A stretch of DNA of 64,000 bases from Hyaloraphidium curvatum SAG 235-1 (taxonomy: Eukaryota > Fungi > Monoblepharomycota): contig JAIVFI010000016.1 of the NCBI GenBank assembly GCA_025558095.1, positions 186,001 to 250,000 of the forward strand, given 5' to 3'. Below the pieces are notes generated by a model. That model was not told the origin of the DNA, ran no database searches, and saw only the letters and a program-made list of their open reading frames with translations. Position numbers and translations under genes: made by a program. Each line of letters begins with the position of its first letter. Within the stretch, counting starts at the first letter, position 1. Positions 5,312-27,350 of this stretch are shown one piece after another.

Positions 5312-8300
5312 TCACCCCCCCCCAACCGCCGCGTAGGACCCGGCTTGTCCGGAAAGCGGCGGTGAAAGTCGGCAACGGCGTCGGGGGCGTGCTGGAGGTG
5401 CTCCCACGGTTCCCATGAGCGCTCCGATGGAGGAAAGTCCTTCCAGTCCACCAAGTACTGCAAGTGATTGCGGAATCGGCGGGAATCCAGGATCTGGTTA
5501 ACCTCGTACTCGGGTTCGCCGTCAATGATGTCCGGGGGTGGAGTCTCTGCGACGCGGCCGGGAAAATCGGCGGTGTCCGAGGGAGTATAGGGTTCGAGAA
5601 GCGAGACGTGAAAAACGTCATGAATGCCCATCGTGGGCGGAAGATCCAATCGAAACGCAACGGGATTGATCTGCTCCTTAATGCGGTAGGGCCCGAGGTA
5701 GCGAACGTCGAGCTTGCGAGACGGTCGACGCGTACGAATATTGCGCGCCGATAGCCAAGCACGGTCGCCGACGCGGAAAACGGGAGCATCCTCACGACTG
5801 ACGTCTGCGGAGTCTTTGTAGCGTTCCTGGGCCCGCTGGAGGTTCTCGCGAAGGACGTCGTGGAGGGCGCGAAGCTCCCTGATGCGTTCCTCGGCGGCGG
5901 GAACGCGCGGCGCGTCGGGTGCTAAAAAGTCGGCTCGCGGGTCGTAACCGTAGTTGGCGCGGAAAGGCGACATGCCAATGCTGGCGTGCACCGAGTTGTT
6001 GTACGCGAACTCGGCGAGCGGGAGCTGATTGAACCAGTCGTCCTGGGCGTAATTGACGTAGGTGCGGAGGTACTGCTCCAAAATCTGATTGATGCGCTCC
6101 GTCTGGCCGTCCGACTCGGGGTGCGCGGCCGAGGAGCGGTAAAGCTTGATGTCCATGAGTCCAAGAAGCCTTTCCCAGAATTTGGCGATGAATTGCGGTC
6201 CGCGGTCGCTGACGATGTCGAAGGGGAAGCCGTGGAGGCGGAATATTTCGCGAAGGAAGAGCCGAGCGGTGTCGTCGGCGGAGAAGTCCTTCCGCGCGCC
6301 AGCGAAATGAGCCTGCTTGGTCGACCGATCGGCCACGACGAGCACGGCGTCGAATCCCTCGGACTGGGGCAGGTCCGTGACGAAGTCCATACTGATCGAA
6401 CGCCAAGGTCCGTCCGGGATTGGAAGTGGCTGGAGAAGGCCGTGCGGGGCATGGCGCGGGGCCTTGGTTCGCGTGCAGGTCTCGCAGCTCCGAATGTAGC
6501 GGGCGACGGTGTCCCAAACACGCGGCCACCAAAAATCTCGCAATATGAGCTCCACAGTCTTGCGAATTCCGAAGTGGCCGGCAGTAACGGCATCGTGACG
6601 GGTTCGGAGAAGCTCCGTCCGAGACTTGCCGACCGGCACGAAGATGAGACCGTCGCGGTAGAGAACGCCATCAAGAAGATGGAAACGAGAAACGGACGCG
6701 TCGTGAGCCTCCAGAAGAGCGATAATGCGACGGGCGAATGGGTCCTTGGCCGTATCGCGACGGATCATGTCCAGGAAATCCAACGAAGTCGCGTGGAGCG
6801 CGGCGACCAGGTGCGGCCCGAGGAGCGTGACGCGCTGTTGCGTAGAGACATCGTCGAAGTTGCCCGGAACGTAGTCGGAGCGGCGAGAAAGCGCGTCGGC
6901 GACGACTTGATCGGTGCCGGGTCGATGCTTCAAAACAAAGTCGTAGCCCGCGAGGGTCATGGCCCATCGAGCCTGACGGCGATTGAGCATCTGCTGCTTC
7001 ATGAAGTACTCCAGGTTCTTGTGGTCCGTGAAGACGTCGACTTTATGCGGGCTACCCTCGAGGTATCGCCGCCACGCCTTGAACGCGTCGACAACTGTGA
7101 GTAGCTCCTTGTCGTAGATCGGGTAGTTGATCTCCGCCGGCTGGAACTTCCGGGAATGAAACGCCACGGGATGCATAAGCCCGTCGTCGGGGGCGGGCTG
7201 CGACAGCACGGCTCCGAGGGCGAAGTCGGAAGCATCTGCCTCAACTGTGTACGGAACGGCTGGATCGGCGTTACGCAGGAACGGAGCCGAAGTGAAAGCG
7301 GATTTGAGCGCATCGAAGGCTGCGCGAGCTTCCGGCGTGAAACGGAACGGATCGCCCGGCTTGAGCTTAGTGAGGTCCGTGAGCGGAAGTGTGATCTGCG
7401 CGTAGTCCTTGATGAAGCAGCGGTAGAAGTTGGCAAAGCCGAGGAAGCTTTGGAGCTGGCGAAGGGTCGCAGGCTCGGGCCATGAGGTGATGGACTCGAC
7501 CTTGGAGGGGTCCATGATGACCTTGCCGTCGCCCACGATGAACCCGGCGTACTCGACGGTCGTAACATCGAACGAACACTTGGAGAGCTTCGCGTACAGG
7601 TGGTTGTCCCGGAGGCGCTGCAGAACCTGGCGCACATGCCCCGCGTGATCGGCTTCGTTCTCTGAGAAGATCAAGATGTCGTCGAGGTAGATCGCGACGA
7701 AGATGTCGAGTACGTCATGGAAGATGCTGTGCATGAAGCGCTGGAAGATGGCCGGCGCATTCATGAGGCCCATGGGCATGACGAGGTACTCGAACTGGCC
7801 GTAGCGGGTGCGGAAAGCCGTCTTCCACTCGTCTCCTTCGCGGACGCGAATCTGACGGTAGGCTTCGCGGAGATCCAGCTTGGTGAAGATCTTTGCACGG
7901 GAGAGGCGGTCCAGAAGGTCGGAAATGAGCGGGATCGGGTAGCGGTCTCGCTTCGTGATCCGGTTGAGACCGCGGTAATCCTCGCAGACGCGAAGCCCGC
8001 CGTCCTTCTTTTTTGCAAAGATGACTGGAACCCCGCTCGGAGAATCCGAAGGGCGGAGACGCCCCGATGCGGAAAGCTCTTCGATGTGCTTCCGGAGTGC
8101 CTCGGATTCGACTTCGGAGAGGCCGTGGAGACGTCCAGAAGGAGGGACTGCCCCTTCTTCGAGTTCGATTGCGCAATCGAAACCGGGACGATGCGGCGGC
8201 AGTGACGATGCAGGCTTGTCCGGGTCGAAGACGTCCGCGAAGTCGGCGTACTGCGATGGGATCGTGGGCTCGGCGGCGGCCGCGCTTGCAGCGCGCGCAG

Positions 8301-19431: not shown

Positions 19432-22400
19432 TCACTTCTCGAGCACGATCCGCCAAATCTCCATCCGCTCCGTCCTCTCGTAGTCGAACCGCTTCGGCAC
19501 CGTCCCCTCGTCCACCTCGACCCGCTCCATCCTCAGCCGGTGCTTCTTGTCGCTCGGCTTTCCGGGGAGCCCGTGCTTTGCCAGCGACTCGTTCGCGTCG
19601 GCGACAGCGGCCTCCAGTTCTTCCCATGCCCGCACCGTCACCTTCCCCGTCAGCGAAAAGTTCGGTCTCTTTTCCATGGCGAGGTATAGCGCCCGCCGCT
19701 TTCGGCCAGCGGGTTGCAGGAGCGTCCTGAGCCGAGACACGAGCATCTCGGTCATGAAGCCATCGTAAGCCACGTCCGCTGCCAGGAGAACGGTACAATC
19801 GTCGCGGAACTGCTGGACCTCGTCGTCCGCCCAGGCGAAACGGGGATCAGTGGGCTGCTTCGTCGGCAGGGGTCCGTCGTCCTCGGAATGCTCGACGGGG
19901 TACAGCGGAGCCGAGTCGTCCGTCCAGTCTAGCTCTCGCACGAGCGCTGTATGAACAAAGGGTCCCTTGCTCTTGGCGCGCCTCGATCCAGCGGCCGGCG
20001 AGCTCGCTGCTGCCACCTCGTTCTCCTCGGCGTTCTGCTGCGCGAGCTCCAGGACCCCAGCCCCGCCCTTGTCCGTGAGAAAGACTCGAGATGCGCCACA
20101 GAGCTTGGCGGCCACGATCCCGACCACGCCCGTTCCGGAGCCGAGTTCAAGCACGGTCTTGCCCGCGACGAGCTTGGGATTGGCAAGGAGGTAGTCCGAC
20201 AGAAGCATGGCGCCGCCCCAGACCTGAAGGCCGACCTGGTCCAGCGGGGTGCCGAGCCGATGCCAGATGCCGATTGAAGTCGGAGGATCCGTGGCGACGG
20301 AATATGTCGTAATGACGGGCTCCGACGCTGAAGGCTCGACGCCAATGTGTTTTCCAAGGTGAACCTCGGAAAGAATCATGTCGATCTTGCCCCCCTCTGG
20401 GACGTCTGCGGCGGAAGGAGAAAGCACCTCCACATCGTCGTCTTCGCTCGCGGAATGTACCTTTGTCGCGGCGCGTCCGCGGGTGGTCCTCGCCTTTGGT
20501 GCCTCTTCGTCGTCGGCGGCGTCGCTCGCAACAGGCTTGGCCGCCCTTCCGCGAGTGGCTCTCGGCGCGACCTCTTCCGCCGCTTCGGGTTCCGCCTCGG
20601 CCTTCTTCCCGGTACGCCGACCTCGCGCCGATGCTTTCGTGGGCACCTCGGGCTCAGGCGTCGCCTCCTTCTTGCTCCTCGATGTACGCTTCGGGAGCGC
20701 AGCAAAGGAAGCATCGTTGTCCGAAATCTCGACGACAACCTCGTCGGCCTTGGCTCGGCGACCGCGCTTGGGCACTTCCAGCTGGGTCGGGGCAGGTTCG
20801 GGGCTCGCTGCTTTCTTGCGACCGCGCACGGGCTTCGGTTCGGGTTCCGGCTGGGGAGAAGCACCTCGCCTGCCGCTGCGCCGGGGCGGCTCTTCTTGGG
20901 CTTGTGGCTCGGGGGTGGCCGCCTTCCTGCCGCGCTTCGCAGGCTTCTCTTCCGCCGCCTCGTCCGCGATCTCGGTCGCCTTTCTCCTCGTACCCCGCTT
21001 CGGTGCGGGTTCCGGCTCGGTGGTGACCTGCGGTGCCGCGGTGGGCCCCTTGTTGACGTATCCCAGGTCGATGACCGATTCGTCATCAGTTGGAGCAGGC
21101 TCCACCGAGAGCTCCTGCACTCGACCGCGCCGTGGCTTGGTTGCGGGAGCTGGTGGCTCGGGCTCGGCAGGGGTTTCGGCCTTTTTCGGAGCACGTCCCC
21201 GGCGAGCCGGCTTCTGGGTTTCCTCCTCAGCCGGCGACTCAACGGGCGGCTCGGTCTTTGCCCCGCGACGGCCACGCTTCGGCGGCTCGGGCTCCTCGGT
21301 CTCGGGTTCCGGCTCAGCAGCCTTGGCCGCCCTGCCTCCTCGGCGCTTGGGAGGCTCCGCGGGTTCAGGTGCGGGCTCCGCCGCGCTCTCTGGCTCGGGG
21401 CTGGCCTTCTTCCCCCTGCCGCGGCGGGGCCGAGCAGCTTCCTCTGCTTGCTCGGGCTCCGGAACCGCAGCCTCCTTCCGGGACCTGCCCTGGCCGCGCT
21501 TGGGCATGTCTGCCGGCTCCGCGGGCTGTTCGGCGAGCTCCTGGGCGGCCTCGGCTCCGTCCTCGTCCTGCTCTTCGACCGTCTCCATGGCTTGGGCCTT
21601 CGCACGGCCGCGGCCTCTTCCGGTGGTCGGCGGCTTTGCCGGCGTCGAGGGCCTGGTCCTCCTGGCCGGCGTTTTCGCGGGGTTTGGCGGCTGCTCCTCG
21701 ATATCCTCCATCAGCGACATGATGCTGCGGTTGCCGGGCGATCGCGACCGCGAGCGGGCGCGCGGCGGAGGCGGCGCGAGCTGCGCCGGCTCCGCGGTGA
21801 GCGAGGGGGAGCCAGAAGGCTCGTTGCGGTCCTCGGCTGCCGTTTCTTCGTGCTGGGCGGTATCCATGGGCTGATCAGGCTCCTGAACTTGAGGCTGCTC
21901 ATCGGCCCGCTCGGCTGCTTCAAGCTCTGCGTCCGACTGCTCGTGCCCTGCGTCCACCTCGGCGGGAATCTCTTCGACGGTGACGATGACCTGTTCTTCG
22001 AGCTGCTCGGCGGGTTCCTCGGCGACCGGAAGCTCCTGTGCAGGTTCTTCCACGATCGGCTCCTCGGCGGCTGGCTCTTCGACGATGGCCTCATCGAAAG
22101 AAATGTCTTCCGCGGTGGCGACGAGCTCTGCACCGGTCTCCTCAACAGGCTCTTCGGGAACGGCGAGGTCCTTCGCAGGCTCTTCCGCGATCGGCTCCTC
22201 GGCGGCGGGCACTTCGACGACAACCTCCTCGAAAGCAACTTCCTCCGCAACAGTGACTAGCTCGGCTCCGGGTTCCTCTACGGGCTCTTCAACGATGGGA
22301 ACCTCCTCCGCCGCTTCCTCGACGATCGGCTTCTCAGCCTCCGGCTCCTCAACGGGGGCAACGGGCTCGTCCACGGCCATGGCGTCATCCGACCGCGCGT

Positions 22401-24673
22401 CTGCGGGGCGCAGTGCGTCGTCCGAGGCGAGCGCTGGAACCTCGCTCGCGTGCACCGATTCGGCACCATGTTGCACTTCGGCCTCCGCCGAATACGAGTC
22501 GCCGTCCGCGGCATCAGATCCCTCCTGGATGTCGGGCAGCAGGGGATCCACCAGCGGCTCCGCGCGGCCTTCCTCCTCGATGTCCTCGGGCTGCTCTGGG
22601 TCGTCCGCGAACGGTTCCTCGGCGGCCTCCTCGCTGAGCTGCTCGAAGACGTCTTCTGGCGCAGCGGCGGCGGCGCGGTCCGGCTGCGGCGCGTCGGCAG
22701 GTTCGTCCTCGAGGAGAAGCTCGGCGGGCTGATCTTCCAGGAGGGGCTCAGCAGGTTGGTCCGCGAGCAGAAGTTCAGCGGGCTGATCCTCGAGCAGGAA
22801 CTCGGCGGGCTGGTCTCCCAGCAGCAGCTCGGCCGGTTGATCCTCAAGCATTGGCTCGGCCGGTTGGTCCTCGATCGAGAGCACCCGCTTGGTAGGATGA
22901 TCATCGTGCACCGGTCCCGCCGGCTGCTCCTCGGCCGCCACCACCGGGGCGGGTTCATCCTCCGCGAGCTCTTCCTCTTCTTCCTCAAGCGTGCCCTCCT
23001 GCACGTCTGGCATAAGCGGATCGACCAGCGGCTCCGCCTGGCCCTCCTCTTCGATGTCCTCGGGCAGCTCGGGGTCGTCCGCAAAGGGTTCCTCGGCGGC
23101 CTCCTCGCTGAGCTGGTCGAATGCGTCTTCGGGCGTGCCGGCGGCGGCGGCCGCGGCGGGCTGATCCTCTAGCAGCGGCTCGGCCGGCTCGTCCTCGAGC
23201 AGCAGCTCGGCCGGTTGATCCTCAAGCAGCGGTTCGACGGGCTGGTCCTCGACCAGCGGCTCGGCCGGCTGGTCCTCGAGGAGCGGCTCCGCAGGCTGGT
23301 CTTCGAGCAGCAGCTCGGCGTGCTGGTCCTCGAGCAGCGGCTCCGCAGGCTGATCCTCGAGCAGCGGCTCTGCAAGCTGATCCTCGAGCAGCGGCTCTTC
23401 CAGCTCGATGTCGTCCTCGATCTCGACCGCACCCGAACCACCCCCAGTCGACCCGGCCGCATCCGCATCCTCGATTTCCTCCGCGGCGTTCTCGCTCCAC
23501 GACACCTCGTCCCCATTCTGCGCTTCGGGCGTGTCGAGGCTGATCGGTTCCTGCTCGGGCGTGTCCAGGCTGATGGGTTCCTCCTCCCTCGCGGGCGGTG
23601 CCTGCTGCTCGACCGGGGTGGGCGGCTTCTGCTCCACGGGGGTGACCAGGTCGACGACCACCTCCGGCCCGTCGCCGCGGGCGGGGCTCGTGTCCACCCG
23701 CACGCCCGGTCGCTCGACCTTGGGCGCAGGCGACCGGAAAACCGACCGCACGCGTTCCTCGACGGCCCCGAGCCTCCCCGCAAGCCCGGACGGGGTCGCA
23801 GGCCCGGGAGACAGCGACCTCCGCACCTCCTCCTCCGCGGGCCTCGCCCCCGCCCTTCCTTGCAGCCCGCTCGGCACCTCCGGCTCCCTGCTCGCTTGGC
23901 GTGCGGGCTGGTCGGGCGCCTGGCGCGCGGGTTGGTCCGGCGGGCTGGGGCTGTCGTACCGAGGGCGCTTGGTCCCGCGGGGCTTCCTGTCTTCGCCGAA
24001 GAAGCCTGGGGAGGGGGAGCGCGAGCCGCGGGGGAACGCGGAGGGGCGGAGGAGGTCGTCGCCGAAGGTCGGTCCGGAGGGGGGGAAGGGGTCCGAGGCG
24101 CCGAAGAAGGAGCGGAAGATGTCTGCGAAAGCGAGCGCGGCGTAAGCGGGGCTTTGACGGCGGCAATGAAGGGCGGCCTACCGAATGCATCGAAGCCGTC
24201 CCAGTCCATGCCGCCAAACCTCGCCGGCGACGGCGTGCGCCTCCCGAACCCGCCCCCGAAAGGCCGCGGCGAGCCCCGCCCGAACGGTTGCCCCCCGAAC
24301 GGGTCCCCCGCGCCGAACTTGGCCCTCTCCTCGCGGCCCAGGATCTCCGCGTCGTATTCCGCGCGCTTGTCCGCGTCGGAGAGCACGGCGTACGCCTCGG
24401 CGACGCGCTTAAACTTTGTTTCGTTGGACGCGCGCTCCGACGGCGCGTGCCGGTCGGGGTGGAACTGCAGCGCGGCCTTGCGGTCTGCGGAATCAAGGCG
24501 GCCGAAACGATTTAAATGATCGGGACGCAGCGCGCGGCGGAGGGGAGCGAACGGGGCGGACGGGAGGGTGAGAAGCCGAACGGCGGTCGCGTCCGCAGAC
24601 GCCCACATCCGGCGCGGATTTCCTCGGACGTCGCGGTGCGCGACACGCCGAGCACCGCGTAGTAGTCCGCCAT
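19432..24673 (-). CDS. J-domain (DnaJ) + acidic/basic repeat tether + METTL21/22-family (Methyltransf_16) lysine methyltransferase; ~1686 aa
   Basis: Exons 24673-24607, 24484-24182 and 24122-19432 join in phase (introns 24485-24606, 24123-24181). MADYYAVLGV..YRKAALQFHPDR..FKRVAEAYAVLSDADKRAEYD; DAFDIFRSFFG; C-terminus VGLQVWGGAMLLSDYL, VLELGSGTG, RELDW, LAADVAYD. Confidence 0.82.
23159..23399 (-). repeat. Coding 27-bp tandem repeat (EPLLEDQPA units); second array at ~22700-22870
   Basis: About 9 consecutive (E)PLLEDQPA-like units in the translation. A ~45-aa block (ED.F.QLSEEAAEEPFADDPE.PEDIEEEG.AEPLVDPL.PD.QEG) follows each array, implying a segmental duplication. Confidence 0.85.
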
Positions 24674-25024: not shown

Positions 25025-27350
25025 TCACCTCCTCTTGGCCTTCACGGTGATCGTCTTGAACGACGTGACTTTGACCGTCTTGGTCGTTTTCACGGTGACC
25101 TTGGTCGTGCTCGTGCGCACAACGGTGACCTTTCCGACCGTCTTGATTGAGGTGGAAACCTTGGTGGTGGTTACGGGCACCTGGAACGAGGACACGCTGA
25201 CGCTCGTGACGACGTTGGTCACCGTCGTCGGCACGGCCACGGTGCTCGTGCTGAAAATCGTGACGGCGGCGAGCGAGACGGTGGTTGTCTGGAGCTGGAC
25301 TCGGTCCGAGATCGAGACCGAGGTGACCGTCGACGTGACGGGTGGCGGGTTGGAGACCGAGACCGAAACTGAGGTAGAGACCGAGGTCACCGTCGAAAAG
25401 ACGCTCGTGGTGGAGACGACTGTCGAGATGCTCGTCGAGACGCTCGTGGTCGTGAGCGTGAGAGTCACGGTGGGAAGATCCGACAGGGTCGCCGTTGCCG
25501 TTTCCATCGTAAGCGAAGTCGTGCTCGTACGAGGGGGTTCGAAAACGGCGCACCACGAGTCCAAGTGCACGGTGGTTTCTTCATCCCAGATGTTGGCCCT
25601 GAGATCGAGCCAGCTGAGCGCATCTTGGAAGTTCAACACGAACGTCAGAGAGTCCAGCGCGCCAAAAGCGGGGCGGTAGCGTGTCCCGAGGCACGCTTCC
25701 TCGACCGAAAGATCGTCCGTCGACCCGTCGTAAGGCAAGAACGGGATGGAGGCGTCATCGTCAAAGATCATGGGTGCACCGGCTGTGCGACCCCCGCATT
25801 TGGTCTCGTTGACGGGCGTCTCGAGCAGGAAAACGGTGTTCATGGACGGGGCGCTGATCCACATGAAGACCTCCGACAACGAGCGGGGGGCATCGAAGTG
25901 GAGCTCCACGTCCACGCCTCCAAAGGAAGCAATGTCCGGCAGCTCCAAGCGGAAGGTCCGCGGCGTGTTGAAGGAGTTGAGATCTTTCTGGACAGGGCGG
26001 CAGTAGCGCATGTGGCGCTCCGAGATCGGCGTGGCAGTGGCCTGCGTGCGAGCGGGCAGCGTGAGCGGCTGGAAGAGGAAAGGAAGACAAAGGAAGCCCT
26101 ACCCATGTCCTTGTCGACGAGGGAGTCGCGGTGGTGAGTGATGTCGTCGTTTGGGTGGTCTCGGTGACTGAAGTACTCCAGCCATGGCCGGAACGAGGAA
26201 ATCCGCGAGTACACGCCGAACGTTTCGGCGCAGCCGAAACCCCAGCTCGTGATTCCGACCTGGGCGAAGCTTCCGTCGTCCATGAACTGCATGAGGGGAC
26301 CTCCGGAGTCTCCCTGGCAGGTGTCCTTGCCCGGATCGCCGGCACAAAGGAAGCTGGGGTCAAAGTCCTCCTCGGTGTACGGGTCGCCCCAGTTCTCCAA
26401 AGTGTAGTTGTTGAGAGCTGAAATGCAATCCTCGTTCGAGGCAGCCGTCAGATTGACCTCCTGCAGGTACTGTGGAAAGGGATGGTTAGCATAAGCGCGG
26501 CCGAGGATGGTGCCCGTACCCTCGGTGCTCCACGAATATTGTCGCCGTCAAGGAAGAAATCGGTGTTCGCCTCTCCGAAGCCGACCGCTTTGGTGACCGA
26601 GCCGGGAGCCGGATCCGCCTCAGCGAAGTTGACGCGGATGACCGCGGGGCTCCCGGTGCCCGTCACGAGGGGGTCCGAGAGGTACAGCACGGCGACGTCG
26701 TTGTGGTACACATACGGAACGTAGTCGGGATGCATCTCGTAGCGGACGACCTTGTACTCGTAGCCGCCTTCCTCCTCGACGGTCTTGCTCCTGTTCCAGC
26801 GGCCCGTCTGGACGTAGGCGGCGCTCACGTCGTCCGCCTCCCAGAAATCGACGCAGTGGGCTGGTAGGTCCGAGTCAGCAACCGCCCAATTGTTCTCGTC
26901 GGACCCTGCCGCCGCCCACCCACCGGCCGTGAGCGCGAGCCTGGGCGCGATGAGGGTCGCTCCGCAAGTGAAGATCTTTACGGGCGGAGATTGGTCGTCC
27001 TCGAGCTGAATGTCCGAAACAGTGAAGAGCATCGCGAAGAACGGGTACTTGTCCGAGCTTGGGTCGACCGTGTTGCCGCCGATGATGGCCGGAGGGGCCG
27101 CGCCGCCAGAGCCCTGTGCGAGGGCGCGTCCCGCCGCGGGCGGCGAGGGCCGGCGTTCCCCGGAGCGGGTCCTGTTCTGGAACTCGGCCTTGATCCGCTT
27201 GAGCTCGTTCAGATACGTGCGGGGCCGGCTAGGGCCGCGGCTGCCGGTGCCTGGAAGGGCCGCGTCGCCGCCGATGGCGCCCACGAGCGCGAGCGCGGCG
27301 GCGAGGGCGACGGCCGCCGCGATCGCGGTGGGGAAGGCGCGCCGGACCAT
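25025..27350 (-). CDS. Secreted trypsin-like serine protease with P-domain-like beta module and Thr/Val-rich tail; apparent frameshift near 26169
   Basis: Signal peptide, IIGG activation site, CGATLI..TA|AHC, HNDVAVL, DTCQGDSGGP, GITSWGFGC, GVYSRIS; downstream exon 26041-25025. Confidence 0.82.

Follow-up and report, generated by a model that had tools for sequence, protein, structure and literature searches.

A J-domain and a METTL22-type methyltransferase predicted to share one gene in Hyaloraphidium curvatum

The reverse strand of a 64,000-nucleotide stretch of the Hyaloraphidium curvatum SAG 235-1 genome (GenBank assembly GCA_025558095.1, contig JAIVFI010000016.1, positions 186,001 to 250,000; hereafter the window, whose own numbering is used throughout) carries at 19432-24673 what is best explained as one three-exon gene for a protein with an N-terminal J-domain, a long disordered tether and a C-terminal METTL22-type protein-lysine methyltransferase. 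Our favoured explanation, to which we assign a probability of roughly 0.62, is that this gene is a fusion confined to a small lineage and that its product would methylate a nuclear client with Hsp70 as a cofactor. We found no description of a J-domain paired with METTL22, although J-proteins that carry an enzyme module are a known kind of protein, as are orthologues of METTL22. Both the full-length product and the function of the fusion are predicted from the architecture of the gene.

RESULTS

Two introns join a J-domain to a 4.7-kb open exon

Pfam and homology searches were run exon by exon. The spliced coding sequence consists of 67 + 303 + 4,691 nucleotides, which gives 1,686 codons and a stop codon (19432-19434, minus strand, as for all parts of the gene). 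Exon 1 (24607-24673) contributes the start codon and helix I of the J-domain in 22 codons plus one nucleotide and encodes MADYYAVLGVSRTATSEEIRAG. It is followed by a phase 1 GT..AG intron of 122 nucleotides (24485-24606), retention of which would introduce an in-frame TAA. Exon 2 (24182-24484), which encodes YRKAALQFHPDRH..., completes the J-domain with its HPD motif, continues into a glycine/phenylalanine (G/F)-rich region and ends in DAF. The second intron (24123-24181) is also GT..AG and phase 1; because it is 59 nucleotides long its retention would shift the frame, while its removal rebuilds the GAC (D) codon of the DIF motif from a g in exon 2 and an ac in exon 3, yielding DAFDIFRSFFG. 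Exon 3 (19432-24122) then runs from DIFRSFFG to the stop as a single open frame of 1,562 codons (4,691 nucleotides). An earlier reading of this DNA (the original prediction) had placed the same two introns, joined the exons in phase and described a 4.7-kb open exon, and all of this agrees exactly with the GT-AG boundaries and phases found here.

The DnaJ profile of Pfam is divided between the first two exons, with profile positions 1-19 matched by exon 1 (E 1.4e-4) and positions 22-63 by exon 2 (PF00226, 48.4 bits against a cut-off of 27.8). The HPD motif lies within ALQFHPDRH, and the G/F-rich region that follows the J-domain reads FGAGDPFGGQPFGRGSPRPFGGGFGRR...DAFDIF, so that the intact J-domain and the G/F-rich DIF motif of the original prediction are both borne out. 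Among solved J-domains, those of DNAJB2, DNAJB6, DNAJB8 and E. coli DnaJ are closest to exon 2. The fusion resembles the class B proteins DNAJB6, DNAJB8 and DNAJB2 in having an N-terminal J-domain with HPD and a G/F region ending in DIF, but it is without their S/T-rich or beta-sandwich C-terminal domain and has an enzyme in that place instead. In line with this difference, a Pfam search of exon 3 returned no DnaJ_C, the client-binding beta-sandwich of class A and B J-proteins.

The enzyme is a METTL22 orthologue

The last part of exon 3 (19435-20403) encodes a seven-beta-strand lysine methyltransferase domain of METTL22 type, as indicated by Pfam, alignment and an AlphaFold2 model. Methyltransf_16 (PF10294) matches exon-3 residues 1294-1369 with 57.7 bits (cut-off 21), which confirms the end domain that had been recognized earlier from WxGA, ELGSGTG and DxxY. 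The motifs themselves read VWGGA, ELGSGTG (motif I), FLTD (the acidic Post I) and AADVAY/DVAY (DxxY), the last three of them in invariant columns. The domain keeps each of the 27 columns that are invariant in an alignment of 12 METTL22 sequences, among them those of the N-terminal LSDVH and the C-terminal Y.R..(M/L)E(I/L)W. Alignment with METTL22 from chytrids, plants, animals and Amoebozoa extends along the entire domain. Identity is 36-45% among the closest named chytrid relatives, with those of Gonapodya sp. and Spizellomyces annotated as METTL22, and ~30% with METTL22 of plants, insects, a sea cucumber and Limulus. Relative to human METTL22 the orthology extends across the whole catalytic domain, taking in LSDVH, motif I, Post I, DxxY and the C-terminal motif. 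The genome holds at least 20 Methyltransf_16 loci, and when it is searched with Spizellomyces METTL22 this gene is the best match (E 2.7e-19 over residues 54-362), the next locus reaching 1.5e-5. By reciprocal best match and full-length alignment, the enzyme is the sole predicted METTL22 orthologue of the genome.

The AlphaFold2 model of the methyltransferase domain has a predicted local distance difference test score (pLDDT) of 82 and a predicted template modelling score (pTM) of 0.84. Its best Foldseek matches are FAM86A and METTL21A-D (E 1e-13 to 1e-10), and no METTL22 structure is present among its PDB matches.

J-domains bind Hsp70, which is established knowledge. If the enzyme at the other end of the chain were to act in the manner of METTL21A, then the protein would be a self-targeting module in which the J-domain docks Hsp70 and the C-terminal domain methylates that same Hsp70. 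This was the proposal of the original prediction, and it draws further support from the fact that family-16 enzymes often act on chaperones and that METTL22 is among the members of the family that co-purify with Hsp70/Hsp90-type chaperones (PMC3547847). However, the domain is orthologous to METTL22, and its match to METTL21A (E 5.8e-7) is partial, being confined to residues 46-127, the part around motif I that binds S-adenosylmethionine (SAM). Three stand-alone paralogues elsewhere in the genome (L006-L008) are much closer to METTL21D (E 1e-12 to 6e-24) and METTL21A (E 6e-8 to 9e-16), and the genome also encodes Kin17 with the target lysine of METTL22 in place. METTL21A (HSPA-KMT) and METTL21D share family and fold with the fusion enzyme but belong to a different subfamily with genes of its own here, and we reject membership of the enzyme in the METTL21A/HSPA-KMT group. 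Of the METTL21/22-type label given earlier, the METTL22 half stands on alignment and reciprocal match, while the half implying a METTL21A-type Hsp70 methylase does not. Given METTL22 orthology and the separate METTL21-like genes, self-targeted methylation of Hsp70 is possible but rather unlikely, and it is not the likeliest use of the enzyme.

METTL22 is among the least understood of the family-16 lysine methyltransferases and has one accepted substrate, Kin17. The human enzyme's activity is trimethylation of Kin17 (KIN) at K135; METTL22 orthologues are absent from examined species without the conserved K135 lysine, and both proteins are nuclear (PMC3547847). Kin17 is encoded by a single gene in the genome, with a lysine at the position corresponding to human K135 (TEKGWF, compared with TPKGWY in the full-length human chain 7abh_7). 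A complex prediction with the methyltransferase domain, the Kin17 winged-helix exon and SAM scored 0.00 with a poorly folded partner, and it speaks neither for nor against binding.

The Kin17 gene itself (L002:1363-1866, plus strand; G000:C24) contains ~17 in-frame read-through codons (VGPGCDPVRAPPQLTLFA) with no counterpart in human KIN17. This stretch is probably a small in-frame intron within the winged-helix region.

One gene or two

The coding frame of exon 3 holds no internal stop, whereas its two alternative sense frames have 10 and 26. G+C content at third codon positions (GC3) stays at 0.66-0.91 throughout and that at second positions (GC2) is low all along, with no break in either. 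The tandem repeats of the exon have periods of 24, 27, 30, 54, 81 and 135 nucleotides, all divisible by three, and are free of indels. An estimate from base composition puts stops at ~2% of random codons, and the open run of 1,562 codons is not a product of chance.

The same architecture recurs in a second, diverged organism. Our search for relatives was restricted to long proteins with the methyltransferase domain, and its sole hit was a protein of 1,309 residues (P0001) encoded on a 93.7-kb contig of Logan run SRR26194948 (locus L001), whose methyltransferase is 56% identical by BLASTP and 59% by phmmer. The locus has a GC content of 54%, and its long exon, which begins with DIFRSFFG and ends in the methyltransferase domain, runs for 1,300 codons without an internal stop, where the other frames have 15 and 32. 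Upstream of it lie an exon encoding MDYYSLLGVPRTAGADEIKTA, an intron, and an exon encoding YRKAALKFHPDR..., with ALKFHPDR in place of ALQFHPDRH and an equivalent G/F region ending in DPF, which is again followed by an intron. The two introns (L001:5479-5589 and 5962-6025) interrupt the same codons in the same phase as introns 1 and 2 of the window, and identity is 61% between exon 1 and L001 (by tblastn) and 62% between exon 2 and L001 exon 2. A metagenomic relative (P0003, 63% identical) has the same series of RGR motifs followed by the methyltransferase, on a contig that ends inside the tether. Neither species has a stop between the two domains, and any J-protein translated from this mRNA must therefore run on into the methyltransferase. 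The reading of J-domain, tether and methyltransferase as one gene, already put forward in the original prediction, is thus supported by the frame, GC3, the repeats and L001, and we regard a single gene as very probable on this evidence.

Some points nevertheless weigh against the favoured explanation. The protein that NCBI lists publicly for this locus (P0002, 762 residues, 19435-21720) starts at exon-3 Met801 (codon 21720-21718), where the acidic part of the tether gives way to the RGR part. It omits the first 924 of the 1,686 residues, and with the J-domain, the G/F region and all of the acidic block left out, the fusion cannot be seen in the deposited annotation. P0002 may represent a methyltransferase-only isoform made from an internal start. 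Kin17 is proposed as the substrate on grounds of orthology, and the role given to the J-domain is one that we infer. The full fusion is known from two assemblies, P0003 showing the tether and methyltransferase.

A model with two products would take the P0002 start at face value: an internal promoter or start near Met801 would give a separate RGR-METTL22 protein, the J-protein would end in an acidic tail, and little or none of the full fusion would be made. Such a model also fits the ancestral condition of METTL22 as a stand-alone protein. It is contradicted, however, by the lack of any stop that would end the J-protein before the methyltransferase, with the frame open in two diverged species, and by P0001 and P0003, neither of which has a Met at the position equivalent to Met801. 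P0002 may moreover be short because the tandem repeats at 22033-23397 were masked during annotation. We consider two products improbable. An assembly chimera, or a chance open frame joining unrelated genes in GC-rich DNA, could appeal to a regional GC content of 60-75%, which makes stops rare, and to antisense open reading frames (ORFs) of 637 and 498 residues overlapping exon 3, but it is extremely improbable, as the other frames do hold stops, conserved motifs occur along the tether and the independent assembly of L001, at a much lower GC content, shows the same architecture, which in practice refutes it.

We rejected these two plus-strand ORFs (20347-22260, 637 residues, and 20378-21874, 498 residues) as genes, since they lie antisense to a purine-rich coding exon. 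All three plus-strand frames hold stops across exon 3 (6, 17 and 20), and the long antisense ORFs are most likely a by-product of purine-rich, stop-poor composition.

A lineage-restricted fusion

METTL22 of animals, plants and other chytrids is a protein of 240-500 residues without a J-domain, compared with which the fusion has ~1,360 extra N-terminal residues. The nearest named relatives of the methyltransferase are from chytrids, the closest being Gonapodya, a member of the same phylum. In Gonapodya prolifera METTL22 is a stand-alone ORF of 423 codons with stops upstream and no long ORF there. A J-domain hidden upstream of the METTL22 genes of Gonapodya and Polychytrium can be rejected, as tblastn found none within 9 kb. 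The original prediction had called for the same architecture to be sought in related genomes; it recurs in the distant L001, whereas Gonapodya and Polychytrium have METTL22 as a stand-alone gene, and the fusion is therefore lineage-restricted. Stand-alone METTL22 is the ancestral state, and the fusion looks like a lineage-specific gain in a small chytrid-type lineage that includes the genome studied here and the organism of SRR26194948.

Wider searches are consistent with such a restricted distribution. DnaJ was absent from the ten longest of the best 150 relatives of the methyltransferase; a scan of metagenome contigs with four close relatives gave one weak 1.3-kb locus and no further fusion; and an Atlas feature search gave generic Methyltransf_16 clusters scoring <0.85, none of them with DnaJ. 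Literature searches that paired Methyltransf_16 with DnaJ, or METTL22 with a J-domain, found no such fusion described. The earlier statement that no described J-domain/METTL fusion was known accordingly holds for the literature searched, for these ten relatives and for the Atlas clusters.

Three observations concern neighbouring and related loci. A 1.3-kb Logan contig (ERR15093815, L003:1-1300) encodes a 53%-identical methyltransferase with the conserved motif KIDLILSDVHLG upstream of the called Met and no Met between KIDLILSDVHLG and the upstream stop, so an intron or an upstream exon is likely there. The Gonapodya prolifera model KXS12771.1 (289 residues; L004:8599-9870, plus strand) looks N-terminally truncated: the ORF from an upstream ATG comprises 423 residues and includes LFLSDVHTG, like the 438-residue protein of Gonapodya sp. 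JEL0774. Finally, a gene with a trypsin domain adjoins the fusion gene in both organisms, upstream in the window (26448-27350, minus strand) and downstream in the other (L001:10156-11727, plus strand), which may be what is left of local synteny after rearrangement.

The tether

Between the J-domain and the methyltransferase lie ~1,240 disordered residues, close to the ~1200-residue tether described in the original prediction. Its first part (23671-24122) consists of DIFRSFFG and a linker with KRPRYDSP, GRAGAR and SGLAGRxGxxEERV, motifs that are invariant between the window and P0001. The conserved islands shared with P0001 are, more fully, KRPRYDSP, LxGRAGARxAE, SGLAGRxGxxEERV and VVDLxTPVEQ, the last of which starts at exon-3 residue 155, just within the acidic part.

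That acidic part (21841-23670; exon-3 residues 151-760) is a repeat region of ~610 residues that includes EDQPAEPLL repeats, as seen by charge count and repeat analysis. Its net charge of -189 makes it extremely acidic, and the tandem repeats found in it agree with the acidic repeat region seen earlier. The acidic character is common to P0001 and P0003, though the repeats themselves are not. A homologue search with exon-3 residues 1-800 gave no match, but low-complexity candidates dominated it to the point that even P0001 was missed, and the negative carries no information.

The following ~479 residues (20404-21840; exon-3 residues 761-1239) carry 17 RG-type motifs ([KR]RGR[KR]-like, for example PKRGRRGAK and ARRGRAPKK) at intervals of ~25-30 residues, a series also found in P0001 and P0003. 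This region had been described as basic, with AT-hook-like units. Neither description survives: P/E/A-rich acidic spacers balance the charge to near neutrality (net ~+4), and the GRP tripeptide that forms the AT-hook core occurs nowhere in exon 3 and in none (0/17) of the RG-type motifs, nor does Pfam match AT_hook in the exon. The order of acidic block, RGR-motif series and methyltransferase is the same in the window and P0001.

Nucleic-acid binding or nuclear import by the tether is plausible from its sequence. A nuclear or chromatin setting for the protein is likewise plausible, given KRPRYDSP, which resembles a nuclear localization signal, the RGR motifs and the link to Kin17.

The tether also contains hydrophobic cores followed by acidic or serine residues, in the manner of SUMO-interaction motifs (SIMs). 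These are VVVDLVTPVE at 23626-23655 on the minus strand (LVVDLITPVE in P0001), SVIDLGYV at exon-3 residues 1016-1022 and VVVEISDND at residues 1129-1137, and we take them to resemble the SIMs of RNF4 and PIAS.

DISCUSSION

In the explanation that we favour, the METTL22 domain would methylate a client in the nucleus, the most probable target being the conserved lysine of the Kin17 winged-helix domain, and the J-domain would trigger ATP hydrolysis by Hsp70 and so leave Hsp70 clamped near the enzyme. As a remodelling cofactor, Hsp70 might there make the target lysine accessible, or it might keep the long disordered chain soluble; as a less likely variant, Hsp70 could itself be the methyl acceptor. 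By analogy, the remodelling role could be compared with that of ASPL, which remodels p97 for METTL21D.

Coupling of a J-domain to another module has parallels. In class C J-proteins such as GAK/auxilin and ERdj5, the J-domain is combined with an enzymatic or a targeting module. The logic of the fusion would be the same, with the J-domain recruiting Hsp70 to the partner module's site of action, but that partner is here a protein-lysine methyltransferase, and the fusion would add this enzyme class to the modules paired with J-domains. On the side of the enzyme, METTL21A and METTL21D-ASPL-p97 set a precedent for family-16 enzymes that act on, or need, chaperone-type remodelling factors (title of PDB entry 7OAT; PMC3547847).

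A natural fusion of METTL22 to a J-domain gives the testable idea that Hsp70 participates in METTL22 action, an idea that fits the earlier chaperone pull-down with METTL22 (PMC3547847). Taken further, the fusion could be a true Rosetta stone, such that METTL22-type methylation would depend on Hsp70 in general, as a cofactor or co-substrate, and would do so also in animals and plants, where the proteins are separate; we offer this tentatively and think it doubtful at present. If it is true, then this lineage would have hard-wired the dependency by means of a disordered scaffold that is nuclear and may bind nucleic acid or SUMO.

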